Assembly (NCBI GenBank): GCA_044892505.1
Contig: CM097882.1
Location: forward strand, 250,480,001 to 250,544,000
DNA: 64,000 nucleotides
Direction of reading: 5' to 3'
DNA from: Schmidtea nova
Taxonomy: Eukaryota
The notes under the pieces were generated by a model. The model had not been told where the DNA came from. It worked only from the letters and a program-made list of their open reading frames with translations, and did not search any database. Of this stretch, positions 5,180 through 60,575 are shown piece after piece. Numbering within the stretch: the stretch's first letter is position 1; each line of letters opens with the position of its first letter. Position numbers and translations under genes: made by a program.

Positions 5180-6475
5180 CGTGGTTGGTTCACGAAGTAA
5201 CTGCACTCGATATCAAAAATAAGAGATATTATAATAACTTTATGTTTCCGTTGTAGAGAATTTATAAAAGGTTAGAAATCTTCATTTTGTTTTATTTAAC
5301 CAATATTTGTTTAGAGCAAATATTTAATCATTCAAAATATGGCAATTTTAAGCATTGAATATCGGTCGGTGTATAAGTTTTTTGTAATGCGCGACGCTTC
5401 AAGATTAGAGATATTAGCAATGCTCCAAGAGACGTATAAAGAAGACTGTCCATGTGATAGAACTATTTATTATTGGATTAGTGAATTCAAAAGTGGAAGA
5501 ATGTCAGTTATTGATGAATCAAAGCAAGGAAGACCGATTGAAATTGATGAAGACAGAAAGAAAAATCAGATTGAATCGTTAATTAAAGGCGAACGAAGGA
5601 TTACAGTAAAATATTTGGCGAAGGAGGTCAATGTCAGTGTCGGTAAGTGTCATGAAATGATAAAAGAGATGGGTGTGCGGAAGTTGTGCAGCAGGTTTGT
5701 TCCTTATTTTTTATCAGCTGAATTGTGTGAAAAAAGGCTAATGATTTGTGAACACAATCTTGCACTGTTCGAAGAACATGGTGAGTCATTTTTGAAAAAC
5801 ATTATAACGGAAGACGAGACACCACTAAGTCTTTATATTCCAGAAAGTAAAAGATCTTCAGCAGAATGGAAGTTTCTAGATAAAAAGCCGACAAAGAAGC
5901 TGAAATCTGGAACCATTCACCGTCGTAATTTGATGCTCTCGATATTTTGGGATAGTGATCGAATAATCAATATTGATTTCGCAGATAGACAAGTTAAAAT
6001 TAACAGTGTTTATTATTCTAATCTCATTGAACAAACTCGGAAGCTTCGACGAAAAAAGAAAAACACAAATTTGTGGCTGCTTCACGACAATGCTCCAATT
6101 CATGCATCAAAACTTGTGTCGGAGAAAATTGTTCGATGTGGCTTTTCAACATTGGAACATGCTGCTTATAGTCCTGATCTGGTTCCAAGTAATTTCTATT
6201 TATTTAGACATTTGAAGAAACACTTGGCTGGTAAATTCATTGTTTCTATTGATTCACTAAAGGAGGAAGTAACAAAATTCTTCGACGAAAAACCAAAATC
6301 GTTCTACAATAACGGGTTTTTAGAACTTCCTGTTCGTTGGAAAAAGTGTGTTGAGAACAATGGCTCTTACATTGAAAAATAAGCCTAGACATGTCGTAGA
6401 TTCTAAAAATAAATGTGTTTTGTCAATATCTTTTGTTTTTGATACCGACTGCAGGTACTTAATGAACCAACCACG
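5180..6475 (+). mobile_element. Full-length mariner element (1296 bp)
   Basis: About 50-bp TIRs starting CGTGGTTGGTTCA and ending TGAACCAACCACG, with TA duplication at 5178-5179 and 6476-6477. Confidence 0.95.
5339..6382 (+). CDS. Mariner transposase, 347 aa, catalytic triad DD34N
   Basis: Uninterrupted ORF: HTH N-terminus, FVPYFL (WVPHxL variant), TEDET, LLHDNAPIH, YSPDLVPSN. The residue 34 positions after the second Asp is Asn. Confidence 0.95.
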   Translation: MAILSIEYRSVYKFFVMRDASRLEILAMLQETYKEDCPCDRTIYYWISEFKSGRMSVIDESKQGRPIEIDEDRKKNQIESLIKGERRITVKYLAKEVNVSVGKCHEMIKEMGVRKLCSRFVPYFLSAELCEKRLMICEHNLALFEEHGESFLKNIITEDETPLSLYIPESKRSSAEWKFLDKKPTKKLKSGTIHRRNLMLSIFWDSDRIINIDFADRQVKINSVYYSNLIEQTRKLRRKKKNTNLWLLHDNAPIHASKLVSEKIVRCGFSTLEHAAYSPDLVPSNFYLFRHLKKHLAGKFIVSIDSLKEEVTKFFDEKPKSFYNNGFLELPVRWKKCVENNGSYIEK

Positions 6476-34538: not shown

Positions 34539-34925
34539 NNNNNNNNNNNNNNNNNNNNNNNNNNNNNNNNNNNNNNNNNNNNNNNNNNNNNNNNNNNNNN
34601 NNNNNNNNNNNNNNNNNNNNNNNNNNNNNNNNNNNNNNNNNNNNNNNNNNNNNNNNNNNNNNNNNNNNNNNNNNNNNNNNNNNNNNNNNNNNNNNNNNNN
34701 NNNNNNNNNNNNNNNNNNNNNNNNNNNNNNNNNNNNNNNNNNNNNNNNNNNNNNNNNNNNNNNNNNNNNNNNNNNNNNNNNNNNNNNNNNNNNNNNNNNN
34801 NNNNNNNNNNNNNNNNNNNNNNNNNNNNNNNNNNNNNNNNNNNNNNNNNNNNNNNNNNNNNNNNNNNNNNNNNNNNNNNNNNNNNNNNNNNNNNNNNNNN
34901 NNNNNNNNNNNNNNNNNNNNNNNNN
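34539..34925. other. Assembly gap (N run) after an (ATA)n tract
   Basis: Direct reading. Confidence 0.99.
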
Positions 34926-35664
34926 TTAGAATTTAGAATTTAAAAGAAAATTATATTTGGTAATTATATAAAAAATTCATGTTTTTAAGTACTTGTTTTA
35001 ATAATATTGTAAATGAAAAGGTTTTTTTAAAAATTTGCATGGTAATTGTAATTGGTTTGAATAGTATGGTTAAATGTGGAAGTTTTTGAAATTGGATTAG
35101 TACTTTTAGTTTTGTGATTATCTGTGGTGGTTAGATTTGAATTTTGCTTGTAATTGTTTTTTAAGGATAATAAAATTATAATTACTAATTATATACATAG
35201 ATTTATGATCAAATTTGCCTTATAAAATCTGACTTAAAGCTTTATAGGTAGGCAATTTGTGCTATACACTTGACTCAATGAGAGCCGCATCCAATTGTAT
35301 TAAAATGCGTGAATTAGAATGATGCGATTATTTGAATCTGGGGAATGAAAGGTACCCAAATACGATTTATGAGGTTTTATGAATTGTGATAGTGGTTATG
35401 ACTTGTGATTGTGAAACAAAGTGTGGGAAACACAGAATCGAACAAATAAATTGTCCTCAAATCGAATAGCTGATCTGAATCGATAAAATCAATATATTTA
35501 GACTGTTATTTACTAATGACGAAGGAAACGTTTTAAATAAATATCAACGAGTCAGAGATCGACTATTAATAAATTAAACAATGTCGATTTCCTGCGAAGG
35601 TACCCAGGCATAATAAATAGAGCAAATAACTGCACATCGTGACTGGTTCGGCGCTTCCAGCTCC

Positions 35665-36140
35665 TATTGCTTTCTTTATTTTCAGCTTGTTGTACCATCG
35701 TTACCATCTTTACGAGAATTATAATATTTGATGTTTCAGGTGGATAATGGATTTCATTCCACATCGTTTCAAACGTATCTAGAAACTCCTTAGAAACACT
35801 TCCGTTTGATGAACATAAAAATTTATGATGTATTGAAAAGGCTTTTTCAAGGCAATATTTACTGCAATATTTGGCACCAGACTTTTCACAATTACAAAAC
35901 GGTGATTTCAATGAGGAAATTATACAAAATTGTTTGTTAGGAACAACTAACGAACTATCTTCCGTTAACCGTTTTAAATTCTCATCAACACCCTCAAGAG
36001 GTTTCATACATTTTCGCATGCGCCGGTGCTATACCTTTTGTTCCAGGAATACTGAATCTGAACAAATAAAACTGAATCCTTTTGAATATCAGTTTCAGCT
36101 AAAAGCCCTCGTACGATTAACGGTCCAAAGAATTGTTGAG
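35665..36140 (-). pseudogene. SMYD5: SMYD5 N-terminal/MYND fragment inside the LTR-like unit (copy 1)
   Basis: RGLLAETDIQK...QYSWNKRY...CMKPLEGVDENLKRLT...CEKSGAKYCSKYCLEKAFSIHHKFLC...WNEIHYPPETSNIIILVKMVTMVQQA matches the SMYD5 hallmark W-x-x-I/V-HYPPET. Frameshifted. Confidence 0.88.
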
Positions 36141-36749
36141 ATATCATTTTCCTTGATTTTATGATTTCAATGCGATAGAACGATGCAAAATTTAAATCAA
36201 CCACTCGAAAAGAATAATTTATTTCAAAATCGAAACTCCAAAATTCAATCATAAATTAAACAAATTAAATTCCAAATCGCATTAATTAATTCCAATAGTT
36301 CGAAAAACATATATTCATCCAAAAATCCGAAATTGAAATAGCAACAAATCCATAAATGCAAAGTACAAATCAGAACTAATTCCAAGTTAAATTCCCCAAA
36401 TAAAATTACAATGAATCCCAACAAACGAATCGATTAATCCAAAAGTTAATTTCAAATCCTCTTTTATACAAAGCAATTCATACAATTCATTAATCTAACA
36501 TATTAAATTCAAAGTTAATTCTGCCAAAAACTTTTCATTAGTTCAGCCAAACCAAAATACCCAAAATCTAAAAAGTTTAATAACTTCAAATTTGGAAGAA
36601 ATGTAATTTCGGATTTTCATTGACAGTTTTCATTGAATTTAAATCACAGATTTAACATAGCAATTCGATTCCCACAATGATAGAACTTTATTTAATTTAT
36701 TCCTACCCTTTGCATCAGCCAACAAAACACACATTGAATAAATCAAGAA

Positions 36750-37179
36750 CCAAAAATTTCCCGTTACAAATATTGTCTTTCGTACAACTGCCAATCAGTG
36801 ATTGAATTGTGCTTTCCATTGTTTCGAAATTGATGTTGTAATAGTGGTTAAACATCTTTTCATTTTCTCTTCGTTGATAATAATGGATTCTGAGTTCAAA
36901 TTCTGTTGGCTTTCATTCAACTTTCCATAGTGATCGCTCTGTATATCCGCTAGGGACCTTTTCAAACTTGAAAGCCGTTTATCCATTTCCTCTATGACGG
37001 TGTAATTAGGAAAATATTCACTCTCTGAGAAATCAAAGCCATGTAAATATTGATTAGTAGATGTGTTAGTGGTGTAAGGCTTATCTCCTAAAAAATCCGA
37101 ACTGTTATGACGACTCATGTGGTTTTCACTGTCGACTTTTCGTCTTTCTTTTGATAATCTGTATTTAGTTTGCTATTGT
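36750..37179 (-). pseudogene. Distal part of an unidentified SL-linked mRNA-like fragment (continues from 40076-39942 across the hAT insertion)
   Basis: Removing the hAT and one TSD copy joins ...IDLDLSFL|HNSKLNTDYQKK in frame. ORF 36795-37118 follows. Gene not recognised. Confidence 0.5.
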
Positions 37180-37187
37180 GTAGAAAT

Positions 37188-39933
37188 TAGGGCATCCAAA
37201 ACCGGGATTCCAAAATTCGGTTTCCGGGAAACCCGGACATTTTCTGGAACCGAAAACCGAGATTGAATTTGGTAAAATTTCCCGGTTTTCGGTGCTGAGA
37301 GCAAGCATTTCTCATATTCTAAAATAAGCAAAATACTGTTCGCAGCTTAATATTTACATTACGAAATAATATAAGTACATATTTCCGTTAATAATGACTG
37401 TGAATTAAAAGATTAGTTCAAAATTAAGCCCTTCGATTACATTTGCAAATATAATTCACAGTCTCTTTAAGACAACATCAATATAATAATTAAATTTGAA
37501 TTTAATTTGATTTATTTATAACTATAACAAGTCTTTTGAAAGTATTAAATTTACTCTAAAGTTATATTGTGTTTTTTTTATATGTGAGTTTTTTTATAGG
37601 TTATATATATTGTATTTTTTATGTAGTGTTATTTTTATTGGTCACTCGGAAGGTCGGAAGTAAATCAATCAAAAGTGTCCAGTTTAATCTTTAAGGCAAG
37701 TAAAATTTTTATTATTATAGAAAACATAAAATTATAGCAAATTTTTTACAACCCAATACTAGACATGTCTATAAAAAATATCAAATTTGAGGAATGCAGC
37801 CAGCGGCTGATTGAAAAAACTCCAGTATGGGAGTATTTTCTCCGTGACAACAATTCTGGTGAGTTTGCGAAATGTAAACGATGTGATAAGCCATTGAAGA
37901 CAACAGGTGGTTCAACAAGTTCCCTCCATAAACATATTACATCTATTCACAAGATCATAGTAAAACCTGTGAAGAGATATGCTTCTGTAAGTACAGCAGC
38001 AACATCAACTGCACCACCAGAAAAGCGCAGAAATGTACACAGTTCTACGCTAACAAACTACCTCATCATTCGTGACAACACTCTTGAAGCGGTATTATCT
38101 CGTATGACAGCCGGCGATGGTTTACCATTCAGAATTTTCATTAGTTCAATTGAGATGCGCAAGTCGCTAATAGCGCGTGGATTTGAAGTTCCAAAATCAG
38201 CTACAACAATTCGAGACATGGTAATGAAATATGGAAAAATAATTCGGGAAAAGTATAAGGTTGAATTACAAGGTTTGAAATCCCAAGGAAAGCTATTTAG
38301 TCTCACTTTCGACGAGTGGACTTCGTGTAAGAACCGACGCTATTTAAACATAAATGCGCACATTAAATGTAAATTTTGGAATTTGGGACTGGTACGAGTG
38401 CGAGGATCGTTGCCTGCAGAATGCTGTATCAAACTTATTGAAGAAAGGCTGCAAATATTTGGCTTGAATTTGCATGAAGACATCATTTGCATTACAACGG
38501 ACGGTGCCGCTGTAATGCAAAAGTTTGGGGAAATATTGACCTGTAAGCAGCAACTCTGCTTCGCTCACGCAATTCATTTAGCAGTATTGGATATCCTTTA
38601 TCAAAAACCTAAACCAGCTCCAGCTGGTAACGATGACGATGACTGTATTTCAGATGGTGATGGTAATGGTGACGACGATCAAGACGAAGGATTTAATCTT
38701 GAATTGGAAGCGAATGAACCACAACTGTGTGAGAATTTTTATGATCTTATCCGCAAAATTAGAACTGTAGTCAAGCTATTTCGTAAATCACTACTAAAAA
38801 CGAAATTCTTCAAAAATACATCAAAGAAGAATTTGAAAAGGAATTGCAATTGATAATTGATGTAAAGACAAGATGGAATAGCCTTTATAGTATGCTTGAA
38901 AGATTTCGTAAATTAAAAAACAACATTCGAAAATCTTTAATAGATCTCAATTCAAGTTTTTCATTCGAAGACGAAGAGTGGAATATGATTAATGATTTAG
39001 TAACAACACTTGAACCAATAAAATTAGCTGCAGAAGCTTTATGCCGCCGAGATGCGACATTATTAACAGCTGACACGACAATTTTGTTTATGATAAACAA
39101 CCTAGGTTGCAGTGAATTTGCTCTGCAAATGAAGGACTCGCTTTGTTATCGCATAAATCAACGACGAACGAAAGTGGCTAGTTTGCTGCAATATTTACAT
39201 AAAAGCAAACAAGATTATGCGGAACTGGATCCAGACTCCGTTTTAAACTTTGAACATTTGACAAAGTCAGCGATAGCAAACATGATAATTGGCCTATCAA
39301 ATCCACTCGAAGGAAGCCAGCAGTCATCTGAGTCGGACTCAGACAATGATCTTGAAATTGGAATAGAATTGTCGTTGGAGGAAAAGCTTAACCGTGCCAT
39401 TACCAAGGATGTAAATTCCACTATTACCCCACCAACAAAAACAAATAGAGACATAACTAATGTTATAAAAAAAGAATTGGCTATTTTCGAACTGGAGGGC
39501 AATCGTGGAAAGAATCTCCAGACCTGTTATGAAAACTTGTTATCCATTCCACCTACGAGCGTAGATTCAGAGCGCGTATTTTCCAATTGTGGTATGGTTT
39601 GTACAAAAATTAGATCATCACTAAACGATCAAAGTTTAGACATTTTAAGTTTCTTACGAACACATTTTAAAACGGAAGCGCACATTTAGAGAAGCTAATA
39701 ACTTTTTATTTATTAAATTGAATTGTGTTTATTTATATATTGAATTTCTGTTATTTTATTTTTGTTCCTTTATTATAATAAAAATTATTTATAATAAAAA
39801 TGCTTTTTTACTTATAATTTATTATTTTTTTATTTACATTTTCAGCACCGGTTCCAAAACCGGGTACCCGATTCTGGAACATTCTAGCACCGAAAACCCG
39901 GTTCCAAAAAAATTCTCGGTTTTGAATGCCCTA
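37188..39933 (+). mobile_element. hAT transposon (2746 bp), near-intact
   Basis: TIRs TAGGGCATCCAAAACCG / CGGTTTTGAATGCCCTA. 8-bp TSD GTAGAAAT at 37180-37187 and 39934-39941. Confidence 0.95.
37765..39689 (+). pseudogene. hAT transposase with BED finger and a single 1-bp frameshift near 38791
   Basis: VWEYF...CKRC...LHKH, LTFDEWTS, ITTDGAAVM, CFAHAIHL, TRWNS, PPTSVDSERVFS. Restoring one C gives KSPTKNEILQKYIKEEF. Confidence 0.93.
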
Positions 39934-40076
39934 GTAGAAATGATAAATCAAGATCTATGCGAAATCCAGAAACATCTCCGTAACTTCGACTTAATCTTTT
40001 ATTATTAATAATCAAGATAAATTTGATCAATGAATGTTAGGAGCGATTGGGGAGTTACATTTGAAATATTCGTTTC

Positions 40077-40117
40077 CATATAGATTTATATAGATTTCGA
40101 TAAGACTGTCTAACGGC
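40077..40117 (-). other. Spliced-leader exon copy A
   Basis: GCCGTTAGACAGTCTTATCGAAATCTATATAAATCTATATG differs by one substitution and one deleted T from the planarian SL as recalled (GCCGTTAGACGGTCTTATCGAAATCTATATAAATCTTATATG). Not followed by a GT donor. Confidence 0.9.
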
Positions 40118-40222
40118 TTCCAGGCACGCCCCACAATCTCTCACAGCGATCAAGCACCCAAATAATTATTTTAATTATTATTTAATTAATTTTAAAAATA
40201 TTTTAAGAGCGGGCGCGATCAT

Positions 40223-40350
40223 CTCGCTTTTACATTCTTGATTGTGTCACTTGATTCAACTTCCAGGGTAATAGTTTTAACTGATAAAGTTCTCACAAAC
40301 ATCTGTATACCACCTCTACATCGTAAACCCAATTGCAAAGTTGATTCCGT
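40223..40350 (-). pseudogene. Polyubiquitin junction fragment
   Basis: [41 protein letters not shown] versus [41 protein letters not shown]. Confidence 0.88.
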
Positions 40351-40399
40351 TTTATTTTCTTTCATTCGCGGACTATGCTCTTTTAAACCTGTACTTGCA

Positions 40400-40830
40400 T
40401 CACCACTTGGCATTGAAGAAAAACACAAACATTCCGCTACTTTAGCTTCATTTACACTGTCTTCATGAATACCCACTTTAATATTTTTAGTAACTTGCTC
40501 ATAAAACTTTTTATAATTAGCTTCGTATTCTATTACTCGTTCAAAAAGTTCTAAACCTTTTCTCCCTAATTCTTTTCTGATTACTTTCAAATTCATATTT
40601 TGTTGCAACATTTCCCGGCGGATATTCAATAGAAAATCTCCACTGACATAACCGGTCCACCTACTAACCTCTACACCTTTAAATATCAACTTATCTTTTT
40701 CAATACAAATTGCTTCGTAAGCAGGTGACACAATTTCATCTCTTTGTCCACTCGACACATCAAATGAACCCTGTCTACTATCAGCATTATCAAAATCTTT
40801 AGGAAAAGCCTGCTTCTCATCGCTCTCGTA
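40400..40830 (-). pseudogene. ORF-U (post-PBS ORF), 5'-deleted copy
   Basis: Near-identical to 43313-43690. Joined to the PBS remnant through a short tandem duplication and deletion. Confidence 0.7.
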
Positions 40831-40869
40831 ACTAATGGTTCGTAACCAATGGTTCGGCGCATCCAGCTC

Positions 40870-41345
40870 CTATTGCTTTCTTTATTTTCAGCTTGTTGTA
40901 CCATCGTTACCATCTTTACGAGAATAATAATATTTGATGTTTCAGGTGGATAATGGATTTCATTCCACATCGTTTCAAACGTATCTAGAAACTCCTTAGA
41001 AACACTTCCGTTTGATGAACATAAAAATTTATGATGTATTGAAAAGGCTTTTTCAAGGCAATATTTACTGCAATATTTGGCACCAGACTTTTCACAATTA
41101 CAAAACGGTGATTTCAATGAGGAAATTACACAAAATTGTTTGTTAGGAACAACTAACGAACTATCTTCCGTTAACCGTTTTAAATTCTCATCAACACCCT
41201 CAAGAGGTTTCATACATTTTCGCATGCGCCGGTGCTATACCTTTTGTTCCAGATATACTGAATCTGAACAAATAAAACTGAATCCTTTTGAATATCAGTT
41301 TCAGCTAAAAGCCCTCGTACGATTAACGGTCCAAAGAATTGTTGA
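40870..41345 (-). pseudogene. SMYD5: SMYD5 fragment (copy 2)
   Basis: Part of the ~885-bp block 41733-40850, which differs from 36533-35644 at about 7 positions by eye. Confidence 0.88.
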
Positions 41346-42089
41346 GATATCATTTTCCTTGATTTTATGATTTCAATGCGATAGAACGATGCAAAATTTA
41401 AATCAACCACTCGAAAAGAATAATTTATTTCAAAATCGAAACTCCAAAATTCAATCATAAATTAAACAAATTAAATTCCAAATCGCATTAATTAATTCCA
41501 ATAGTTCGAAAAACATATATTCATCCAAAAATCCGAAATTGAAATAGCAACAAATCCATAAATGCAAAGTACAAATCAGAACTAATTCCAAGTTAAATTC
41601 CCCAAATAAAATTACAATGAATCCCAACAAACGAATCGATTAATCCAAAAGTTAATTTCAAATCCTCTTTTACACAAAGCAATTCATACAATTCATTAAT
41701 CTAACATATTAAATTCAAAGTTAATTCCGCCAAGATAATTAAATTAATACGAATAAACAAATCAAAAATTTTAATGTTTTTAAATTCTAAAAATTCCCCA
41801 ATAAAATCCGTTAACTCAGAAAACCAAAATCAAATCTAAAAATCTTTTCAAATTCACCAAAATCAAGTCCCAGTTTCTTTTTTAAATTCCAAAATCCCAA
41901 ATTACATTCACTGATTCATATAAACCAAATCAAAATCAATTTCTAAAAAACAAACATCAAATTAAAGTTTTACTAATCAATTCGAATAATTGATTTATTT
42001 CCATCAGCGAAATTCCCCTCTCGCGTCTGTGTGCGCACCCAAAGCCAAATAGGTATCACACAACCACCGCGCACACAGACGTTGTTGCC

Positions 42090-42264
42090 TTCTAGGAATA
42101 ATGTTTCTGTTGGAGACATTTTATGAAACTACTTTTTGTATTGATGATTTTTCACTCCTTCTTAGACCCATTAAAAGTATTCGTGGATATTCATCATTGA
42201 TAGATTGATTTTCCAAAGTATTGCTGTCGCATTGATAGTGGAAATTATCAGAACTATCCATTGT
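42090..42264 (-). pseudogene. RRAGC/D: RagC/RagD (Gtr2-type) GTPase 5' fragment, in frame with the SL-terminal ATG
   Basis: MTMDSSDNF...[21 protein letters not shown](2-bp deletion)FHKMSPTETLFLE versus [33 protein letters not shown]. Confidence 0.92.
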
Positions 42265-42307
42265 CATATAAGATTTATATAGATTTCGATAAATCCGTCT
42301 TTACGGC
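42265..42307 (-). other. Spliced-leader exon copy B
   Basis: GCCGTAAAGACGGATTTATCGAAATCTATATAAATCTTATATG. The last 28 nt are identical to the recalled planarian SL. Confidence 0.9.
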
Positions 42308-42342
42308 TTCCAGGCTTACTCGACAATCTCTCACAGCAGTCA

Positions 42343-42564
42343 AAGCTCTAGAAATGGTGAGAGAAATTCCAGCGGTTTTAGTTCTGATAGATCATTTATC
42401 TGAGATAATGTAGATTTAAGGCTCGATAAATTACTGTACCACGGATCTGACATTTCTTCTTGATAAGAACAAATTGCGTTGCCTTTCATTCTTCTTTTCA
42501 TGGCCGCCAACAATAGTGTTACTTCTAATTGAACGACATATTTAGCATCTTTCTTGCTGGTCAT
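42343..42564 (-). pseudogene. GBF1: GBF1 (Arf-GEF) N-terminal fragment
   Basis: KYVVQLEVTLLLAAMKR...QEEMSDPWYSNLSSLKSTLSQINDLSELKPLEFLSPFLE versus IYIIQGEINIVVGAIKR...DEERDPLLHSFSHLKEVLNNITELSEIEPNVFLRPFLE. Confidence 0.85.
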
Positions 42565-42579
42565 TTAGAATAGATATCG

Positions 42580-42621
42580 CATGAAAGATTTATATAGCTT
42601 TTCATAAGTCCGTTTAACGGC
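42580..42621 (-). other. Spliced-leader exon copy C (diverged)
   Basis: GCCGTTAAACGGACTTATGAAAAGCTATATAAATCTTTCATG, 35 of 42 identical to the recalled SL. Lies 15 nt before the GBF1 ATG. Confidence 0.82.
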
Positions 42622-42726
42622 TTCCAGGCTCGCCCTACAATCTCTCATAGCGATCAAGCATCCAATTAATTCTTTTAATTATTATTTAATTAATTCTAAA
42701 AATATTTTAAGAGCGGGCGCGATCAT

Positions 42727-42977
42727 CGCTCTGTAATTATGAAAAGTTTGGTGCCAAATATTGCAGTAAATAAAAAAAGCCTTTTCAATACATCATAAAT
42801 GTGTATGTTCATCAAACGTAAGTGTTTCTAAGGAGTTTCTAGATACGTTTGAAACGATGTGGAATGAAATCCATTATCCACTTGAAACATCAAATATTAT
42901 GATTCTCGTAAAGATGGTAACGATGGTACAACAAGCTGAAAATAAAGAAAGCAATAGGAGCTGGATGCGCCGATCCA
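42727..42977 (+). pseudogene. SMYD5: Truncated LTR-like 3' end with a degenerate SMYD5 fragment (copy 3, opposite orientation)
   Basis: MWNEIHYPLETSNIMILVKMVTMVQQAENKES, ending GGAGCTGGATGCGCCGATCCA. Confidence 0.8.
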
Positions 42978-42978
42978 T

Positions 42979-42996
42979 TGGTAGCAGAGCGTGGTT
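42979..42996 (+). promoter_or_regulatory. Primer-binding site, initiator-Met tRNA type
   Basis: TGGTAGCAGAGCGTGGTT, 18 nt, 1 nt after ...CCA. Same pattern as animal iMet PBS (TGGTAGCAGAG...GGTT). Confidence 0.8.
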
Positions 42997-43096
42997 CCCT
43001 TCGGGGGGCCACGCACGGCGGGTAAGCTTTTTGATTGCTTATAGCGGTCACAGCGCCGCATTATATTCTAAAATGTTTAAAATTTGAAAATTAATA

Positions 43097-43790
43097 ATGA
43101 ATTTAATGGGGGGATTTAGTGCTGTAATGGGCCCCAGCGACCATCCCCTTCCCTTAAGCTCAGTTGGGTCTGAGAATGAAAATGGTTGGTATACTGAAAA
43201 TACTTATTTGAAAAAGGTTATTAAGCTTGATGGTAGCCGTAGTAATAAATCAAGCATGCTCTTTAGTGAGAAACTTAGGGATACGTATGATAATCCCACA
43301 AAGCTTGCATGGGGTTACGAGAGCTATAAGAGGCAGGCTTTTCCTAAAGATTTTGATAAAGATGATAGTAGACAGGGTTCATTTGATGTGTCGAGTGGAC
43401 AAAGAGATGAAATTGTGTCACCTGCTTACGAAGCAATTTGTATTGAAAAAGATAAGATGAGATTTAAAGTTGTAGAGGTTAGTAGGTGGACCGGTTATGT
43501 CAGTGAAGATTTTCTATTGAATATCATCCGGGAAATGTTGCAACAAAATATGAATTTGAAAGTAATCAGAAAAGAATTAGGGGGAAAAGGTTTAGAACTT
43601 TTTGAACGAGTAATAGAATACGAAGCTAATTATAAAAAGTTTTATGAGCAAGTTACTAAAAATATTAGTGGGTATTCATTGAAGAGCGAAATGAACATTT
43701 AGGGAGATTAGAGATAGACAAAAGCATTGAAAGCCAAGAGAGAGAAGTACAGCCAGAAAGAACAATTTAACTTTGGGATGTTGTTTATCT
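43097..43790 (+). CDS. ORF-U, uncharacterised ORF in the gag position after the PBS
   Basis: 201-aa ORF 43097-43702. Comparison with the 40400 copy suggests small indels near 43670 and a native end ...[35 protein letters not shown]. No Gag motifs recognised. Confidence 0.55.
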
Positions 43791-44149
43791 GGATTAATTT
43801 TGTATATTGGGCGGAATTTTAACTTTGAATTAAATTGCTGAGTAATTTGGTTTTTTCAGATTTATTTAATTGAATAGGGTGGTGAACCTTTGAATTACCT
43901 TTGATTTTTCAAATATAAAGATGAATTAATTATGTTGAATTATTAATACTACAGTTTTAAAATAAATAAATATTCTCAACATTAAATTGCAAATCACAAT
44001 GGAGATATTTATCTAAGGGAACACGCGTTCAAAAATTATGTTCAATTAACAATCGACTACCAGAAATCTAAAGAGATAGCAAGTAAAAATTTTCTTTTTG
44101 TCGACCTAAATTACGTAGGAATTATAAAGTGAAATCTATGCAGATGATC

Positions 44150-45129: not shown

Positions 45130-46370
45130 ACAAACTTAAATTAAAAAGCGATAAGAGCGCCGAACACCAGCTACAGCGACGTATTAGGCTGCTCGAAGGA
45201 AGGATCAATCGGCAAGCATTAGAAATGGATAACTTGAGGCAAACATGGTTTAGTTCCGCCTCAATAAACGAAGTATTGCAAAGAAATGATCGTATAAAAC
45301 AAGCATTAGGAGAACAGACCGCGGAACTGTGCTACTAGATTAGAATTGAATAGATGTCTGAGAACCGTCTCAGGTGACTTCGTGGAGAAGTATTTAAAAG
45401 AGCAAATCCGCTCCAGTACCTTTGATCGATGGTGGCCAGGCAAAATGTCCGCGGACAAAATGTCACGGACAAAATGTCATGAGGACAAAATGGCACGGGA
45501 CAAAATGGCACGGGACAAAATGTCACGGACAAAATGTCATGAGGACAATCAAACTTCTTCTCCGTCAATTGGAACTGGGAACAACGGCTGGGAGGAAAAA
45601 GAAAACATACATCCGCGTCAACGAGGCATTGCATGTCATGGTGACCGACTACAACAACCGAGATCCAATCACATATTTAGGAGACATTGCACGTGTTTTA
45701 AACATTAATGTTGTTTGACTTCATTAGTTATTTTCATTGATAAAAGACTCGATTATTTATTTTTAAAAGCGTTTTTAAAATAACCTAATAATGTTATAAG
45801 ACTAAGCTATTTTATTAACTGAATATCTAACACTAAATTAATATAGGCTAGATATAATTATTATAATAAAGTTAGACTAAATTTGATAAATGCATTATTG
45901 AAATATTTTCATTGTTTTTCTGTCTTATATTTTTTTTCCGAAATTTTTTGTCTGTGAGTCCGTGACATTTTGTCCTCATGACATTTTGTCCGTGACATTT
46001 TGTCCGCGGACATTTTGTCCCGTGCCATTTTGTCCTCATGACATTTTGTCCGTGACATTTTGTCCGCGGACATTTTGTCCCGTGCCATTTTGTCCTCATG
46101 ACATTTTGTCCGTGACATTTTGTCCGCGGACATTTTGTCCTAGCACCTTGATCGATAGGTGCTGAAGAGGGCGACCACAGTTGAAACCCAAACGAATTGT
46201 TCAATAGCATCTCAACCGGTGCAGGTAGTTGAAAAGACATCATCTACTAATTCGACGAAAAGAAAGCCATAGAAACGAAATCGGCTTGGTGCCAAAAAAC
46301 GAGGGAGCGAAGTGCGTTTGCTGAAAGATTGCATATTTAAGTAGATTTACTAAGTGGGCTATCTGAGTGC
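45130..46370 (+). pseudogene. ORF-B family, copy 4, split by a MITE (tail duplicated at 49548-49780)
   Basis: QLQRRIRLLEGR...QTWFSS...LELNRCLR...QIRSSTFDR | VLKRATTVETQT...KRNRLGAKKR..RERSAFAERLHI*VDLLSGLSE. Confidence 0.82.
45431..46147 (+). mobile_element. MULE-type MITE (717 bp) with tandem-repeat TIRs
   Basis: Ends GGTGGCCAGGCAAAATGTCCGCGG / CCGCGGACATTTTGTCCTAGCACC. 9-bp TSD TTGATCGAT at 45422-45430 and 46148-46156. Arrays of GGACAAAATG units. Internal MULE C-terminal relic YIRVNEALHVMVTDYNNRDPITYLGDIARVL. Confidence 0.92.
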
Positions 46371-46734
46371 TAATGTTCTGTGGTCACACCAATCCATCAA
46401 ATAGTGTTTTGGAGTCTTTATTATTATGTCGATGTATCTCTTGTTTCATTGTATATTTTATGCACCATAATAGCTCTCGTTAGTAATGTTTGGATATATT
46501 TTTCACTGTATGTGTTTATTTGTGTCTGTTTGAATTAATAATTACTAATTTTGATTAAATAAACTAATCTGTTTGTTGATGATAATATTACATACTTTGA
46601 TTAGAGATGTGATTATCATTTAATGCCTTGTCTTATTTATATTTAATGTTGTGTAATTATATATGTAAAAATTTTGTAATACTGAATATTTTGTTATTTT
46701 TATAAATTAAAAGTTGTTTAAAATATGATGTTAA

Positions 46735-46816
46735 CCCTTTCGCGGACAATGACGTGTATACACGTCATACTACTGCGTCATACTACATCAACTAAAAAAG
46801 TGCGTCCGCGAAAGGG
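46735..46816. mobile_element. piggyBac-type mini-MITE (82 bp)
   Basis: TTAA-CCCTTTCGCGGAC...GTCCGCGAAAGGG-TTAA. The opposite foldback arm has the empty single TTAA site near 49190. Confidence 0.93.
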
Positions 46817-46994
46817 TTAAGCGGATACCACTCACGATAAATTGTAAAAAAATATATATTAGTTACTTGAAATAAAATTTAAAAGATATCTGAATTATTG
46901 AATTTTTTAATAACTAAATAAAGAGATATATTTATTCCATTCAAAAGTACCTTTGACACTTTAATTCAAAACTATAGTTACTAAATTATAAATT

Positions 46995-48095
46995 ATGGAT
47001 TCTATGATGTGTGCTTATGATAGATACTATGAATGCTTCCTAAAAACAGCTGATTATAAACTATTGAGGATATGCTTCAAATGTTTATCGACTATTGCGG
47101 AAAACAATCAACAATTCCGTAGATTGACTAGAACGAAATATCTACAAGAATCATTTGATTCGATATCCAACAGTTTTGATATAATCTCTTCAATCGAATG
47201 TGAACCATTACGTGAGGTTATGTCTGATTTGTCAGATGACATGACAATGGAAATTGTTGTCAATTACAATGAATTATGCTGTAAATTAATAGTACTGATG
47301 TTAGAGCGGGTTGATGAGAAATTGACAATGAATTGTTTGTGCAAATATGACAGCAAATGCTTAATGACTATCAAATTACTTTGCATTCATCCACATTCGC
47401 TTTTGATGGCATTTGCACACGACAATAAAGGCAAATTTTTTCAAGACCTCGCAATGATGCTGGGTATGAGTAATGATTATATAAAATGCGTTGTTTGCTA
47501 CATCTTGAATGTGCCAATTGACAAAGACCCGGGACTGGTCTCCTGCCTGAGGATGGAAGACCCATCCAGTCTACTGGTTGATATCATTATCAACCGTGAT
47601 ATCATTGCCAATCACCACCTGTGCACCAATGCGACAATTTTAATGATAATTTTTCTACGAAGCAGTGCTTCATTCCATGGATGTTTAATGGACATCGTGC
47701 AAACTTCCTTCGTAATACAAAAATTGGTTCTGACATATGATAAAGAAATTGTTTACGCGAAATACGGAATAAAAATTCCGGACTTATTACTGTCTGAAGA
47801 ATCCAATGGTGATATTGTTGCTCATTATTTCACACAGTCATCAAACGTTACAGATTACTTATTCGACCTCCTCATTACTGGTAAAAGTTTAATACCGCGC
47901 GTTATTAAATGGCTGAAGACATTTGTCAATTGTAAAATATTCTGTCAAACAAGTATTTGCGCATATGGTTTGACAAATGTCCTTCGGTGTTGCCCGAACT
48001 ATCTAGACGTACAACATGTAAAAACACAAGAATTAAAAATCGCCGTTACTAATATAAAAAATTACATTAAATATATGTTTTTATTCAAATTATAG
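46995..48095 (+). CDS. Intronless 366-aa predicted helical-repeat (ARM/HEAT-like) protein, unknown
   Basis: Long open ORF rich in Leu/Ile/Cys. No family recognised. The 5' half is duplicated inverted at 48512-49011. Confidence 0.6.
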   Translation: MDSMMCAYDRYYECFLKTADYKLLRICFKCLSTIAENNQQFRRLTRTKYLQESFDSISNSFDIISSIECEPLREVMSDLSDDMTMEIVVNYNELCCKLIVLMLERVDEKLTMNCLCKYDSKCLMTIKLLCIHPHSLLMAFAHDNKGKFFQDLAMMLGMSNDYIKCVVCYILNVPIDKDPGLVSCLRMEDPSSLLVDIIINRDIIANHHLCTNATILMIIFLRSSASFHGCLMDIVQTSFVIQKLVLTYDKEIVYAKYGIKIPDLLLSEESNGDIVAHYFTQSSNVTDYLFDLLITGKSLIPRVIKWLKTFVNCKIFCQTSICAYGLTNVLRCCPNYLDVQHVKTQELKIAVTNIKNYIKYMFLFKL

Positions 48096-48099
48096 AATT

Positions 48100-48630
48100 A
48101 TGAATGGACTAGAATCAGACAATTATATCAGCGCAATCCGATTTATTGGACAAGCATTTTCTAATAAGAAAGCCTTCAGTGGAACACTCCCTTATGAGAT
48201 CCTTCTTGGGGGATTACCCGATGATTTCGATCGACCTTTGGTTTGGCCTGGAATTCATCTTACGTTTCTATTTGGCATAACTGAGTGTATGGTAACAAAT
48301 TTCCGTAAATTGAATACAACCTATAAATATTCCAAAACAAAAGTATTATTAAATTTATTTGTAAGATTACATAAAATTAAAAGCGAGGAAACAAAAATAA
48401 AATTGATGAATCGGCAACCACACCAAAAATCAGAATACCTTGGTGTGATTTCCGGTTCATCAAAATGGTGTGGTTGCCGATTCATCAATTTTATTTTTGT
48501 TTCCTCGCATTACAACGCATTTTATATAATCATTACTCATACCCAGCACCATTGCGAGGTCTTGAAAAAATTTGCCTTTATTGTCGTGTGCAAATGTCAT
48601 CAAAAGCGAATGTGGATGAATGCAAAGTGA
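48100..48630 (+). CDS. Unknown ORF starting 4 nt after the previous stop; C-terminal part reads into the inverted arm
   Basis: ORF track. Native sequence only up to 48511. Confidence 0.4.
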   Translation: MNGLESDNYISAIRFIGQAFSNKKAFSGTLPYEILLGGLPDDFDRPLVWPGIHLTFLFGITECMVTNFRKLNTTYKYSKTKVLLNLFVRLHKIKSEETKIKLMNRQPHQKSEYLGVISGSSKWCGCRFINFIFVSSHYNAFYIIITHTQHHCEVLKKFAFIVVCKCHQKRMWMNAK

Positions 48631-50302
48631 TTTGATAGTCATTAAGCATTTGCTGTCATATTTGCACAAACAATTCATTGTCAATTTCTCATCAACCCGC
48701 TCTAACATCAGTACTATTAATTTACAGCATAATTCATTGTAATTGACAACAATTTCCATTGTCATGTCATCTGACAAATCAGACATAACCTCACGTAATG
48801 GTTCACATTCGATTGAAGAGATTATATCAAAACTGTTGGATATCGAATCAAATGATTCTTGTAGATATTTCGTTCTAGTCAATCTACGGAATTGTTGATT
48901 GTTTTCCGCAATAGTCGATAAACATTTGAAGCATATCCTCAATAGTTTATAATCAGCTGTTTTTATGAAGCATTCATAGTATCTATCATGAGCACACATC
49001 ATAGAATCCATAATTTATAATTTAGTATTATAGTTTTGAATTAAAGTGTCAAAGGTACTTTTGAATGGAATAAATATATCTCTTTATTTAGTTATTAAAA
49101 AATTCAATAATTCAGATATCTTTTAAATTTTATTTCAAGTAACTAATATATTTTTTTACAATTTATCGTGCGTGGTATCCGCTTAACATCATATTTTAAA
49201 CAACTTTTAATTTATAAAAATAACAAAATATTCAGTATTACAAAATTTTTACATATATAATTACACAACATTAAATATAAATAAGACAAGGCATTAAATG
49301 ATAATCACATCTCTAATCAAAGTATGTAATATTATCATCAACAAACAGATTAGTTTATTTAATCAAAATTAGTAATTATTAATTCAAACAGACACAAATA
49401 AACACATACAGTGAAAAATATATCCAAACATTACTAACGAGAGCTATTATGGTGCATAAAATATACAATGAAACAAGAGATACATCGACATAATAATAAA
49501 GACTCCAAAACACTATTTGATGGATTGGTGTGACCACAGAACATTACAGAGGGCGACCACAGTTGAAACCCAAACGAATTGTTCAATAGCATCTCAACCG
49601 GTGCAGGTAGTTGAAAAGACATCATCTACTAATTCGACGAAAAGAAAGCCATAGAAACGAAATCGGCTTGGTGCCAAAAAACGAGGGAGCGAAGTGCGTT
49701 TGCTGAAAGATTGCATATTTAAGTAGATTTACTAAGTGGGCTATCTGAGTGCCAACTAATAAATCTGATAGACACTAGTGTATTTTTAAAATAACTGAAC
49801 TTTGATGTGGGTGAAATGTTAGTTATTAGTCAAGCTGGGGGTTATAGCTTTTTATGTTGGCGGGATTACCCTAATTTTTACATTAAACAAATGTTTAATA
49901 TCGCCACCAACACTTCAACAGGATTATGACTGCCAACCATTCACGAGAATGGCGGTGAACAATAATCAAAAGTATGATATTTATGATGTATATGGAATAT
50001 TATACGTGGCATCTACCCTTATTTTAATAATCGCCCTGGACGATAGGGTTTTGGCAGTTAGTTTTGACCTAAACAAGTTGAAAATAAGAAAACAGAAATT
50101 AAAAACGCAATACGCAATTGCAAATGGTTATAGTACAACTGAAGTACACCTTTACTATGTTCCTGGACCAGGTCACGATGACCTGGACTTCTAACCAATT
50201 CAAGTTGCCTACCAACAACGCCACAGAATAAATGTGTAAATACAACAGACTTTATCATATGTGATTCATTTGACCTTAATTTTTGATCAATGTGATTTTT
50301 AA

Positions 50303-54826: not shown

Positions 54827-56391
54827 TTGATACCAAGTCTGTCTTCAGCAATACTAATGAAGTTCAACTTCCCTCGACTCATCCATCTTTATCGCACAAA
54901 ATATACTCGTGCGATCGGAGATAAAGTTGGATCACTGCTTGTCAAAACACCTTTCAAGAAAAACCAAAAGTGCCGGGAAACTTTCACTGACCATGCAAAA
55001 GCGCCGTACCATTTACGATCAGTTGAAACAGCAAAAACTCTTCGTGTTATCAACAAAAATTCTGAAATAACCATTGAAAGACTATTGACGATGCAGAAAG
55101 AACTTGAACGAAAGCAGAATTTTGTTCTTTTGAAAGGAATTTTTGACACCATCAATTATCTCGCTCGACAGTCGTTACCATTCCGAGGACACAGATATTC
55201 TGGTGGGATCTTCAACGACCAAAAAGGCATCAACGACGGAAACTTCAGAAATCTGATTAGACTTCTTGTTTCGAGGGACGAGTTTTTCCGGAATGCATTA
55301 GAAAATTCGCCGAAAAATGCTACCTACTTAAGTAGTACAATGCAGAATGAAATAATCGTCATGATGAATGAGATTGCGTTGACGAAGATTCTTCAGAAAG
55401 TGAAAAAGTCCGAATTCTTCTCTATTCTTGCCGACGAGTCATCGGATGTTTCCGGAATAGAACAAATGTCGATTGGACTCCGTTTCATCGACATTGATGA
55501 CGGAAATATTGTTGAAGCGTTTTTAATGCTCACAGATTTGGGCAATGTCATTGCCAAAGGACTTACTGACTCATTGTTAAGCGGAGCAAAAACGATGAAG
55601 CTACGAATGCAAAAGTGTCGAGGAATTGGATTTGATAATGCAAGAGTGATGAGTGGAGAGAAATCAGGGGTTTCGGCAATAGTTCGCCATCAATTTCCTT
55701 TAGTTACTTACGTACATTGCTTCAGTTATCGATTGAACTTGGTCATTGGAGAAAGTTGCAAAGTAAAGCAGATAACTCTGTGTCTTAGCACAAATAAAAT
55801 TATCTACAACTTCTTAAACTCACCGAAAAAACAAGTTGAATTTGGCAAATCTATCGAGAAAACAACACCGGAAACTGCTAGGAGAAAGCTAGAGAACACT
55901 TGTGAAACGCGCTGGGTTGAATTAGTCGAGAACTCAAAGAAAAATTTCGAGAAAACACAGTGCTAGCAAATTTCAAAAATCTTATGTTCAACCCTAAAAG
56001 AATGTTAAGCGGCGAAGTTCAGAATAGTCTTCAGCAACTTTACCATTTCTACACAGAAGATTTGAACGGATCACTGCAGATGTTTTTCGGTGAAGTTGAG
56101 ATGTGGCAGAAAAGACTGGGAAATGCAACTGTAAAACCACAAACTGCGATGGACCACCTAAAAACACGCCCTCAAGATATGTTTCCTAACGTGTTCCAAT
56201 TACTGAAAATCTATAATGTGATTCCTGTAACAACCGCTGACGTCGAACGCTCTTTCAGCAAAATGAAACAACTTAAAACGGACGACAGAAACACGACAGG
56301 AGAGGACGTAGAGAGCGCACAAGAATTAAATTTAAAATTCTTTGGGCTAAAACACGAAATAAAACATAGTAATCACAAAACTCAGAAATAA
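54827..56391 (+). pseudogene. ZMYM1-like (DUF4371) hAT transposase, internally deleted
   Basis: LPFRGH...GNF, NATYLSSTMQNEII, FSILADESSDVS, FDNARVMSG, HCFSYRLNL, CETRW, then FPNVFQLLKI...VTTADVERSFS. Confidence 0.9.
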
Positions 56392-59075: not shown

Positions 59076-59349
59076 NNNNNNNNNNNNNNNNNNNNNNNNN
59101 NNNNNNNNNNNNNNNNNNNNNNNNNNNNNNNNNNNNNNNNNNNNNNNNNNNNNNNNNNNNNNNNNNNNNNNNNNNNNNNNNNNNNNNNNNNNNNNNNNNN
59201 NNNNNNNNNNNNNNNNNNNNNNNNNNNNNNNNNNNNNNNNNNNNNNNNNNNNNNNNNNNNNNNNNNNNNNNNNNNNNNNNNNNNNNNNNNNNNNNNNNNN
59301 NNNNNNNNNNNNNNNNNNNNNNNNNNNNNNNNNNNNNNNNNNNNNNNNN
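59076..59349. other. Assembly gap
   Basis: N run. Confidence 0.99.
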
Positions 59350-59606: not shown

Positions 59607-59946
59607 NNNNNNNNNNNNNNNNNNNNNNNNNNNNNNNNNNNNNNNNNNNNNNNNNNNNNNNNNNNNNNNNNNNNNNNNNNNNNNNNNNNNNNNNNNNNNN
59701 NNNNNNNNNNNNNNNNNNNNNNNNNNNNNNNNNNNNNNNNNNNNNNNNNNNNNNNNNNNNNNNNNNNNNNNNNNNNNNNNNNNNNNNNNNNNNNNNNNNN
59801 NNNNNNNNNNNNNNNNNNNNNNNNNNNNNNNNNNNNNNNNNNNNNNNNNNNNNNNNNNNNNNNNNNNNNNNNNNNNNNNNNNNNNNNNNNNNNNNNNNNN
59901 NNNNNNNNNNNNNNNNNNNNNNNNNNNNNNNNNNNNNNNNNNNNNN
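59607..59946. other. Assembly gap
   Basis: N run. Confidence 0.99.
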
Positions 59947-60492: not shown

Positions 60493-60543
60493 TCATCCGA
60501 AATAATCCCGAGCCGTCGGGTCATAGAAATCGTAGGGGTCATC

Positions 60544-60575
<32 letters not shown>

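Follow-up and report, generated by a model that had tools for sequence, protein, structure and literature searches.

The non-LTR retrotransposons NeSL-1, SLACS and CRE are specific to spliced leader (SL) genes: they interrupt the SL exon and encode a reverse transcriptase and an endonuclease. In a different setting, Buzdin and colleagues reportedly characterized chimeras produced by LINE-1 template switching, for example, U6 snRNA-mRNA pseudogenes, and Slamovits and Keeling are said to have found, in 2008, relict spliced leaders in genomic gene copies of dinoflagellates. Such relict leaders in dinoflagellate gene copies, that is, SL-tagged retrogenes, are reviewed elsewhere (PMC6050394, PMC5585692). 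Chimeric retrocopies mediated by LTR retrotransposons, through template switching at microsimilarities, were described by Tan et al. 2016 (PMC5131818), and partial SL sequences found at LTR- and LINE-associated loci of parasitic flatworms have been read as integrated trans-spliced transcripts (PMC12582326). Whereas SL-tagged retrocopies are a familiar feature of dinoflagellates, there are hardly any records of them in animals.

Three putative SL exons and the host mRNA pieces behind them

In the 64-kb stretch of Schmidtea nova DNA analyzed here (hereafter, the window), a pattern search located the motif GAGAGATTGT-N7-GCCTGGAA three times on the minus strand, at 42646-42622, 42332-42308 and 40142-40118, with 0 mismatches; 0.05 occurrences are expected by chance, and three were reached in 0 of 100 shuffles. 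The original prediction had described three leader copies with an 8-nt spacer: the copies are present, with the same SL coordinates, but the spacer is 7 nt, and the N8-spaced version of the motif has 0 matches in the window. Directly 3' of each motif lies a sequence of 42, 43 or 41 nt (copies 1, 2 and 3, respectively) that ends in ATG, with pairwise identities of 81-86%. Flatworm SLs terminate in AUG, and on this general knowledge together with the internal evidence, we regard the three sequences as putative SLs. The bases right after them are CG, AC and GA, that is, none of the three is followed by a GT donor, as had been predicted; the layout of a functional SL RNA gene, with a GT donor and an intron containing an Sm site after the SL, was not found at any copy, and coding sequence follows instead.

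Two profile HMMs, one for the three leader+SL copies and the other for the two long leader blocks, were searched against the window only, where three leader+SL copies are all that was detected. DNA scans with the leader+SL and the SL core gave 0 matches in metagenome, viral and prokaryote-genome collections, and literature text searches with pieces of the SL and the leader returned nothing relevant from a body of text outside which the key planarian SL papers lie; in the articles found there that refer to planarian SLs, no SL sequence is printed. The three units consist of the following features.

42622 to 42727, minus strand: leader block copy 1, about 106 nt, with a GC-rich head, an AT-rich middle and a conserved proximal 40 nt
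42580 to 42621, minus strand: SL exon copy 1, 42 nt, ending in ATG, then no GT
42346 to 42579, minus strand: 5' fragment of GBF1 mRNA, a 15-nt 5' UTR and codons 1-73, uninterrupted
42308 to 42345, minus strand: leader copy 2, the proximal approximately 38 nt only, a more divergent variant
42265 to 42307, minus strand: SL exon copy 2, 43 nt
42083 to 42264, minus strand: 5' fragment of RagC/D mRNA, in frame with the SL ATG, with one frameshift in the reading frame
40118 to 40223, minus strand: leader block copy 3, about 106 nt
40077 to 40117, minus strand: SL exon copy 3, 41 nt
39934 to 40076, minus strand: cargo 3, first part, from a transcript without an identified gene
36600 to 37187, minus strand: cargo 3, second part, with an open 107-aa ORF at 36795-37118

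The 73-codon ORF of copy 1 starts at the same first Met as a DCB-domain protein of 278 aa (P0001) and shares 81-83% identity with its N-terminus; a second match is to the N-terminal end of a Sec7/GBF1-TPR protein of 1900 aa. These matches confirm the earlier assignment of this cargo to the start of GBF1. Likewise, the cargo of copy 2, predicted to be RagC/D in frame with the SL ATG, is confirmed as such by its matches to PDB chains of RagC and RagD (E-values from 6e-6 to 8e-4), and it also matches the start of the Pfam family Gtr1_RagA, with a score below the cut-off. The third unit had been described as leading into an ORF without an assigned identity, and the 107-aa ORF again had no relatives in the protein and Pfam searches made. 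No relatives of cargo 3 or of the GBF1 piece were found within the length band searched in the protein collection, and exact protein look-ups of the window ORFs, P0001 and P0007 yielded no record.

In three other animals, the GBF1 genes are interrupted by one or two introns within codons 1-73; compared with these genes, the GBF1 piece runs on without an intron, and its 3' end coincides with no exon boundary in any of the three. We considered and rejected splicing as the source of the joint between GBF1 and leader copy 2: two of these animals have no exon boundary at this point, and the apparent intron after PFLE in the third, L001, is an artefact, namely, an assembly frameshift, and was discarded.

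In each unit, the SL exon is contiguous in the DNA with an mRNA 5' end and the donor site is absent, the hallmark of a retrocopy of a trans-spliced mRNA. Given that these donor-less joins connect SL exons to the true 5' ends of the GBF1 and RagC mRNAs, they can only derive from trans-spliced RNA that was copied back into DNA, in support of the original view of the SL-to-mRNA joins as reverse-transcribed trans-spliced mRNA. The SL at this locus thus proves the RNA origin of the copies. Gene capture by DNA transposons (Pack-MULEs, Helitrons or hAT transduplication) was discarded as a candidate because the SL-mRNA joints require an RNA step.

The source of the shared leader

A sequence shared upstream of what should be a capped 5' end does need an explanation, as the original prediction maintained; the dedicated fusing mechanism that was proposed to provide it is not required. 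The joint between leader and SL is the same to the base in all three copies, with no added nucleotides; a single contiguous template accounts for this more readily than three independent fusions would. Leader blocks 1 and 3 are 92% identical, and their homology begins at the same base, about 106 nt upstream of the SL, next to different 5' neighbors (antisense fragment A for copy 1 and ubiquitin for copy 3; see below). Both of these 5' joints fall in short overlaps, the one between the 5' end of leader copy 1 and inverted fragment A being a 5/6-nt microhomology, as expected at the end of a template. In the proximal leader, copies 1 and 3, which accompany SLs of 41-42 nt, agree at 36 of 40 positions, and copy 2, with its 43-nt SL, has only 31-32 of 41 positions in common with the others. 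With three copies, this pattern is suggestive of leader variants that go together with SL variants; the divergence of the leader block and that of the SL do not differ significantly (Fisher p = 0.08).

The leader has no match in Rfam at E-values up to 10 and does not form a stable fold (z about 0.3-0.5), and in this respect it resembles spacer or promoter DNA more than a small RNA. It is also not a known small nuclear RNA, at least among the Rfam families. More broadly, the candidacy of the leader, the hairpin segment and the 330-nt insert (see below) as a small RNA, a ribozyme or the 3' half of an SL RNA was rejected, with no Rfam match, tRNA or unusual fold found.

With moderate confidence, we interpret the locus as a decayed patchwork of host RNAs copied into DNA, with leader and SL derived from one contiguous template, most likely an SL RNA gene and its transcribed 5' flank. 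The shared leader most likely shows what adjoined the SL in its source and not the work of a special capture machine. Under this scenario, the three source RNAs would be trans-spliced mRNAs (of GBF1, RagC/D and a third gene) whose SL carried a 5' extension. The extension would stem from a genomic SL RNA gene whose transcription began in its 5' flank, about 106 nt upstream, or alternatively, from read-through in an SL gene cluster. Such an extended transcript would keep the SL donor site available to the spliceosome, and trans-splicing would then yield leader-SL-mRNA molecules. A reverse transcriptase would have copied these and other mRNAs, switching template at RNA ends and at short microhomologies; template switching of this kind would account for the partial 5' fragments, for the joints that lie within coding sequence and for the GBF1 and RagC units placed back to back. 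We infer that the leader is a transcribed SL gene flank; apart from the joint between leader and SL, the joints would come from template switching at microhomologies or from end joining, of which we infer the former. In a DNA-level variant of the same scheme, the cDNAs may have recombined with SL RNA genes through the 42 nt of SL homology and gained the gene flank in this way. The chimeric product would then have become fixed in the chromosome. Its later changes at the DNA level are visible in the window: a 0.95-kb stretch was duplicated directly, another was duplicated in inverted orientation, sequence was deleted, and a hAT transposon inserted itself. We know of no description of 5'-extended SL RNAs serving as trans-splicing donors.

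The mechanism originally proposed is a dedicated activity that attaches mRNAs, by their capped SL end, to the 3' end of one element sequence and thus builds up a repeat-plus-cargo record of transcripts. That all three SLs lie behind the same motif, that the cargos differ and that two of the units are arranged head to tail are all compatible with such an activity. Nevertheless, we consider it highly improbable: untemplated bases are absent from every leader-SL joint, the leader seems to vary along with the SL and is not a recognizable or stably folded RNA, the mosaic also includes pieces without an SL, the three units do not make an array, and no gene for an associated enzyme was found among the window ORFs scanned.

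The exact upstream boundary, the same in three events, could also reflect site-specific integration: the leader would be the upstream half of a repeated target, and a sequence-specific nuclease, or retroelement machinery acting in trans, would have placed 5'-complete SL-mRNA cDNAs at a single precise site. The G/T-rich DNA that follows two of the cargos could then represent the downstream half of the target. However, the cargo of copy 1 is followed by another leader and not by G/T-rich DNA, and no empty target in the window and no genes of a site-specific retroelement nearby were found. The marks of LINE-type processed pseudogenes are missing as well: there is no A-run after any cargo, and the sole target-site duplication is that of the hAT transposon. 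Site-specific integration is, accordingly, very unlikely.

The surrounding mosaic and its later history

The three SL units belong to a larger patchwork of host-gene pieces that includes HSP90, ubiquitin and two pieces to which no identity could be assigned. The features of this patchwork and its later modifications are as follows.

42000 to 42082, minus strand: segment containing a hairpin with a 14-bp stem; the fold is unremarkable (z -1.8), and Rfam has no match to it
41381 to 41999, minus strand: G/T-rich low-complexity stretch
40845 to 41380, minus strand: fragment A, coding-like and cysteine-rich, negative in PDB and Pfam searches
40353 to 40832, minus strand: internal fragment of HSP90 (Pfam HSP90, E-value 6e-27; tblastn)
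40222 to 40352, minus strand: ubiquitin fragment, the end of one unit and the start of the next, continuing into the first bases of leader copy 3
37188 to 39933, plus strand: hAT DNA transposon inside cargo 3, with 16-nt terminal inverted repeats (15/16) and an 8-bp target-site duplication
35644 to 36590, minus strand: direct duplicate of 40850-41790 (G/T-rich stretch and fragment A), 96.5-99% identical
42722 to 43695, plus strand: inverted copy of fragment A and the HSP90 fragment, 93-97% identical

The HSP90 fragment runs contiguously over 100 codons without an intron. Together with ubiquitin and the other SL-less pieces, it is joined to its neighbors at arbitrary internal points; the mosaic as a whole combines partial mRNAs, several parents and microsimilarity at the joints, the same combination that marks LTR-mediated chimeric retrocopies. 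Fragment A had been considered as a SET/MYND gene, an assignment that the negative PDB and Pfam results did not confirm. Stretches weakly similar to the G/T-rich one are present after cargo 3 (36200-36600) and on the plus strand at 43760-43950, and TRF detected no array in the G/T-rich stretch, contrary to the notion of a microsatellite-like tail.

A constant leader, an SL, a variable cargo and a G/T-rich stretch follow one another in this order twice, a layout compatible with a non-autonomous retroelement that comprises the leader and a fossil SL. The 42-nt SL would serve as a homology bridge for swaps between the element RNA and SL-bearing mRNAs, and a later switch back at a microhomology would preserve the leader and the tail and exchange the stretch behind the SL for 5' pieces of host mRNAs. 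Consistent with this possibility, GBF1 and RagC are represented by 5' fragments only and microhomology occurs at joints, and the general mechanism is on record for LTR elements (PMC5131818). Against it, the G/T-rich stretches are of low complexity and only 60-76% similar to one another, and neither element ends, nor LTR-like direct repeats around the mosaic, nor further copies, nor any boundary of an element around the SL units were found in the window. Furthermore, there were 0 Pfam matches to reverse transcriptase, RNase H, integrase or gag among the 46 window ORFs scanned (including each of the 29 ORFs that reach 120 aa and contain no N, plus 16 shorter ones; one ORF was scanned up to an N run, and two further listed ORFs lie in N runs), and the protein collection contains no near-identical chimera of the HSP90-ubiquitin ORF. 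We therefore regard a retroelement of this type as possible but unlikely, and the stronger claim, that leader and SL are the head of a new flatworm retroelement or SL-gene-derived unit that swaps in the 5' ends of host transcripts via the SL handle, as distinctly unlikely. Fragment A, the 330-nt insert, the hairpin segment and cargo 3 might be element sequence.

Several changes affected the mosaic at the DNA level. The hAT transposon encodes BED and hAT-dimerisation domains, spread over two ORFs; it has its own termini and target duplication and sits inside cargo 3, not around the mosaic, and transduplication by this transposon was rejected on these grounds. The inverted copy holds a 330-nt insert (42983-43313) that the direct copy has lost. 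A palindrome with 100% identity lies nearby, at 46371-49546.

The intronless, SL-bearing content of the locus is what contamination by cDNA or a chimeric assembly would be expected to contribute, and the perfect palindrome shows that the assembly may have local problems. Nonetheless, such an artefact is scarcely credible. No N run touches the region, the duplicated parts of the mosaic differ from each other by 1-10%, the reading frame of one cargo is broken, and the GBF1 piece is 19% away from its closest relative at the protein level. A hAT insertion with terminal repeats and an intact 8-bp target-site duplication within cargo 3, along with the later duplication and inversion, indicates that this is genuine, old genomic DNA.

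Implications and comparison with known systems

The extra leader preserves something that is normally invisible, namely, what adjoined the SL on its 5' side in the template. Should the leader be the flank of an SL RNA gene, then either 5'-extended SL transcripts participate in trans-splicing in planarians or cDNAs recombine with SL genes via the shared 42 nt. To our knowledge, neither process is on record, and genome and RNA-seq data that already exist would allow direct tests of both. If, instead, the leader is element sequence, it would point to a retroelement for which the SL serves as a universal homology handle; if it repeatedly swapped in the 5' ends of host transcripts, such an element would exchange cargo naturally and contribute to exon shuffling. 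Under either reading of the leader, the locus is a compact natural case of multi-gene exon shuffling through RNA.

With NeSL-1, SLACS and CRE, the locus shares an association of retroelement activity with SL RNA genes; these elements, however, interrupt the SL exon, whereas here the SL exons are entire and no reverse transcriptase or endonuclease genes were found in the window. The chimeric retrocopies mediated by LTR retrotransposons, including maize Bs1, resemble the locus in combining partial mRNAs from several parents in a chimera, with short similarities at the junctions, but are flanked by LTR-retrotransposon sequence, of which none was found in the window. The LINE-1 template-switch chimeras are similar in that a constant 5' partner is combined with variable 3' partners by a template jump at an RNA end. 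Their 5' partner, however, is a known small RNA in full length, and their 3' partner lacks its 5' part and carries a poly(A) tail and a target duplication; here, by contrast, the 5' partner has no match among the RNA families of Rfam and the 3' partner is 5'-complete, 3'-truncated and devoid of poly(A).

The SL-tagged retrogenes of dinoflagellates provide the same proof as the present locus, namely, a DNA-encoded SL at the 5' end of a gene copy that is taken to demonstrate reverse transcription of a trans-spliced mRNA. They are usually whole genes, often functional, with nothing constant upstream of the SL, whereas the locus described here, in an animal, is a mosaic in which the copies are short 5' fragments and the SL is preceded by a common leader of up to about 106 nt. 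The loci of parasitic flatworms are alike in phylum and in interpretation, as integrated copies of trans-spliced transcripts; in those worms, partial leaders are found inside mobile elements, whereas the planarian locus combines full SLs with the 5' ends of host genes, behind a constant non-SL block.

Leader-SL units and their cargo

On the minus strand, the window contains three units in which a short conserved motif is followed by a spliced-leader (SL) exon and then by coding sequence:

42646-42622 (-), motif; 42621-42580 (-), SL copy 1, 42 nt
42332-42308 (-), motif; 42307-42265 (-), SL copy 2, 43 nt
40142-40118 (-), motif; 40117-40077 (-), SL copy 3, 41 nt

With a spacer of seven nucleotides (N7), the motif occurs exactly three times in a pattern search of the window, with no mismatches, against a chance expectation of 0.05 (none of 100 shuffles gives three). 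The three motif copies of the original prediction are thus upheld, with a corrected spacer, given that the N8 form proposed at the time matches nothing in the window. The previously assigned SL coordinates were reproduced for all three copies: directly 3' of each motif lies a sequence that ends in ATG, with pairwise identities of 81-86%, and the dinucleotides that follow (CG, AC and GA) include no splice donor, as had been claimed. A profile search yielded no further leader-SL copies anywhere in the window, and pattern scans with leader plus SL and with the SL core produced no matches in the metagenome, viral and prokaryote-genome collections.

The leader, i.e. the non-SL block directly upstream of each SL, is longer than originally described. 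Over about 106 nt directly 5' of the SL, copies 1 and 3 are alike (92% identity); in this block a GC-rich head is followed by an AT-rich middle and then by 40 conserved proximal nucleotides, and the leader has no exceptional fold. Their similarity starts at the identical base despite different 5' neighbours, namely an antisense copy of fragment A (a coding-like, cysteine-rich piece with a direct copy at 40845-41380 (-)) for copy 1 and a ubiquitin fragment for copy 3. The 5' joint of leader 1 shows a short overlap (5/6 nt); at that of leader 3, ubiquitin homology reaches 2-3 nt into the block, a putative overlap. Leader 2 retains only the proximal ~38 nt, begins where the GBF1 piece ends and is the most divergent (31-32/41 compared to 36/40 for the pair of copies 1 and 3); it is this divergent leader that accompanies the 43-nt SL form.

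Behind SL copy 1, 15 nt precede a 73-codon ORF whose product, starting at the shared initiator methionine, has 81-83% identity to a 278-aa DCB-domain protein (UniParc entry P0001). It can also be aligned with the N-terminal end of a protein of 1900 aa that contains Sec7, HUS and GBF1-type TPR domains. These matches confirm the earlier assignment of this cargo, which, judged by protein similarity, is the 5' end of GBF1. The best GBF1 match, the ATG-ending SL and a G+C content of 30% are in keeping with a triclad planarian. In none of the three animals compared does the GBF1 piece end at an exon boundary, and the piece is uninterrupted across positions that hold introns in those animals. In an unrelated animal (L001; GCA_002754855.1, MRZV01001508.1, 6210-6230), the public GBF1 model ends an exon after PFLE; the conserved continuation is present in the DNA in another frame, and this exon end is probably a one-base assembly error, not an intron.

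In copy 2, as predicted, the reading frame set by the SL ATG is that of a RagC/D start: the peptide matches the N-terminus and the beginning of the P-loop of RagC and RagD in PDB, as well as the first positions of Pfam Gtr1_RagA, the latter below the family cut-off; the reading frame is broken once further downstream. No identifiable gene was found directly behind SL copy 3, and a 107-aa open frame further down this cargo has no relative in Pfam or in a word-indexed search of proteins 0.55-1.75 times its length.

The surrounding mosaic and its reshaping

The three units belong to a more extensive patchwork, given here in minus-strand order from high to low coordinates:

43695-42722, inverted copy of fragment A, 330-nt insert, HSP90 fragment
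leader 1, SL, GBF1 piece
leader 2, SL, RagC piece
42000-42082 (-), segment that follows the RagC piece and contains a 14-bp hairpin
G/T-rich low-complexity DNA, ~620 nt
fragment A
internal HSP90 fragment (Pfam E 6e-27)
ubiquitin fragment, end of one unit and start of the next
leader 3, SL, cargo 3
37188-39933 (+), hAT DNA transposon inside cargo 3, 16-nt terminal inverted repeats (15/16), 8-bp target-site duplication
G/T-rich DNA
fragment A, second occurrence

The 330-nt insert (42983-43313 (+)), located between fragment A and HSP90 in the inverted copy only, and the hairpin segment are both GC-richer. Neither matched Pfam or PDB, and these two segments and the leader matched no Rfam family or tRNA. 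A SET/MYND gene was the first guess for fragment A and was not confirmed.

This region was subsequently reshaped at the DNA level. The segment 35644-36590 duplicates 40850-41790 (96.5-99% identity), the inverted arms of the mosaic show 93-97% identity, the 330-nt insert is gone from the direct copy, and the hAT, with BED zinc finger and hAT dimerisation domains, encodes its transposase over two overlapping ORFs, with one interruption of the reading frame. An origin from contaminating cDNA, or from a simple chimera of the assembly, is excluded by the duplications, the insert loss and the transposon insertion with its target-site duplication, and we retain only a trace of probability for such an artefact. 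No N run touches the region. The three N runs of the window (34539-34925, 59076-59349 and 59607-59946) all lie outside the leader-SL locus. At the point of insert loss, a 14-nt tandem duplication (40826-40856) looks like a deletion scar with microhomology.

Mobile elements in the window

None of the scanned ORFs of the window contains a domain of reverse transcriptase, RNase H, integrase or gag; the scan comprised every N-free ORF of at least 120 aa (29 in number) and 16 of the 42 that measure 80-119 aa. Of the other listed ORFs in the longer class, two fall in N runs and one was scanned as far as an N run. There are no LTR-like repeats around the mosaic. A poly(A) run is likewise absent, and the only target duplication is that of the hAT. 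DNA transposons are abundant in the window, and other features of its sequence are:

1227-2942 (+), MULE transposase fragment, then a RING-finger ORF
5339-6382 (+), mariner/Tc1-type transposase ORF
45408-45548 and 45960-46170, a 15-nt unit arrayed in inverted orientation on both sides of a 400-nt AT-rich core, resembling subterminal repeats of a DNA transposon
46166-49755, almost perfect palindrome whose arms (46371-47494 and 48512-49546) share 98.5-100% identity, with a direct repeat on its two sides (46166-46373 = 49548-49755); it is a foldback element or else an artefact of assembly, and a 366-aa ORF that extends from one arm to the centre has no match in Pfam
54827-56391 (+), second hAT-like gene, DUF4371 and hAT dimerisation
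60493-63340 (-), protein-primed family-B DNA polymerase (Pfam DNA_pol_B_2) on two consecutive ORFs, with at least one frame interruption and an Endonuclease VII-like stretch; this segment looks Polinton/Maverick-like

Origin of the leader-SL-mRNA joints

Joints of SL to mRNA such as these are the mark left by trans-splicing and subsequent reverse transcription, and on this point the original prediction was right. It further invoked a dedicated mechanism that fuses SL-capped mRNA ends to one element sequence. However, the joint between leader and SL is identical in all three copies, without added bases, and the leader variant and the SL variant go together, which suggests that the template already contained leader and SL as a single piece; a dedicated fusing mechanism is accordingly not favoured and appears quite improbable. 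A single template piece is also suggested by the discrete 5' end common to two copies with different neighbours, as expected at the end of an RNA template, and by the greater resemblance of the leader to spacer DNA than to structured RNA.

Such a piece would come most economically from an SL RNA gene plus its 5' flank, the two being transcribed together into a 5'-extended SL RNA that could still donate its exon in trans-splicing. The remaining joints, among them GBF1-leader 2, HSP90-ubiquitin and ubiquitin-leader 3, sit at internal positions, some with short overlaps. Their best explanation is template switching, a mechanism documented for LTR-element-mediated chimeric retrocopies (PMC5131818), or microhomology end joining. 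We give this derivation from the flank of an SL RNA gene, including a DNA-level variant in which cDNA recombines with SL genes through the SL, about an even chance of being correct. A distinctly less probable alternative is an element bearing both leader and SL that exchanges its cargo through SL homology, and site-specific insertion at a repeated target is unlikely.

The closest known cases are the SL-relict retrogenes of dinoflagellates and template-switch chimeras mediated by LTR elements or LINEs, along with the pieces of SL sequence that parasitic flatworms carry at loci of mobile elements (PMC12582326). The locus described here differs from each of these in that a complete SL is present on host-gene 5' ends, with a constant non-SL block in front.
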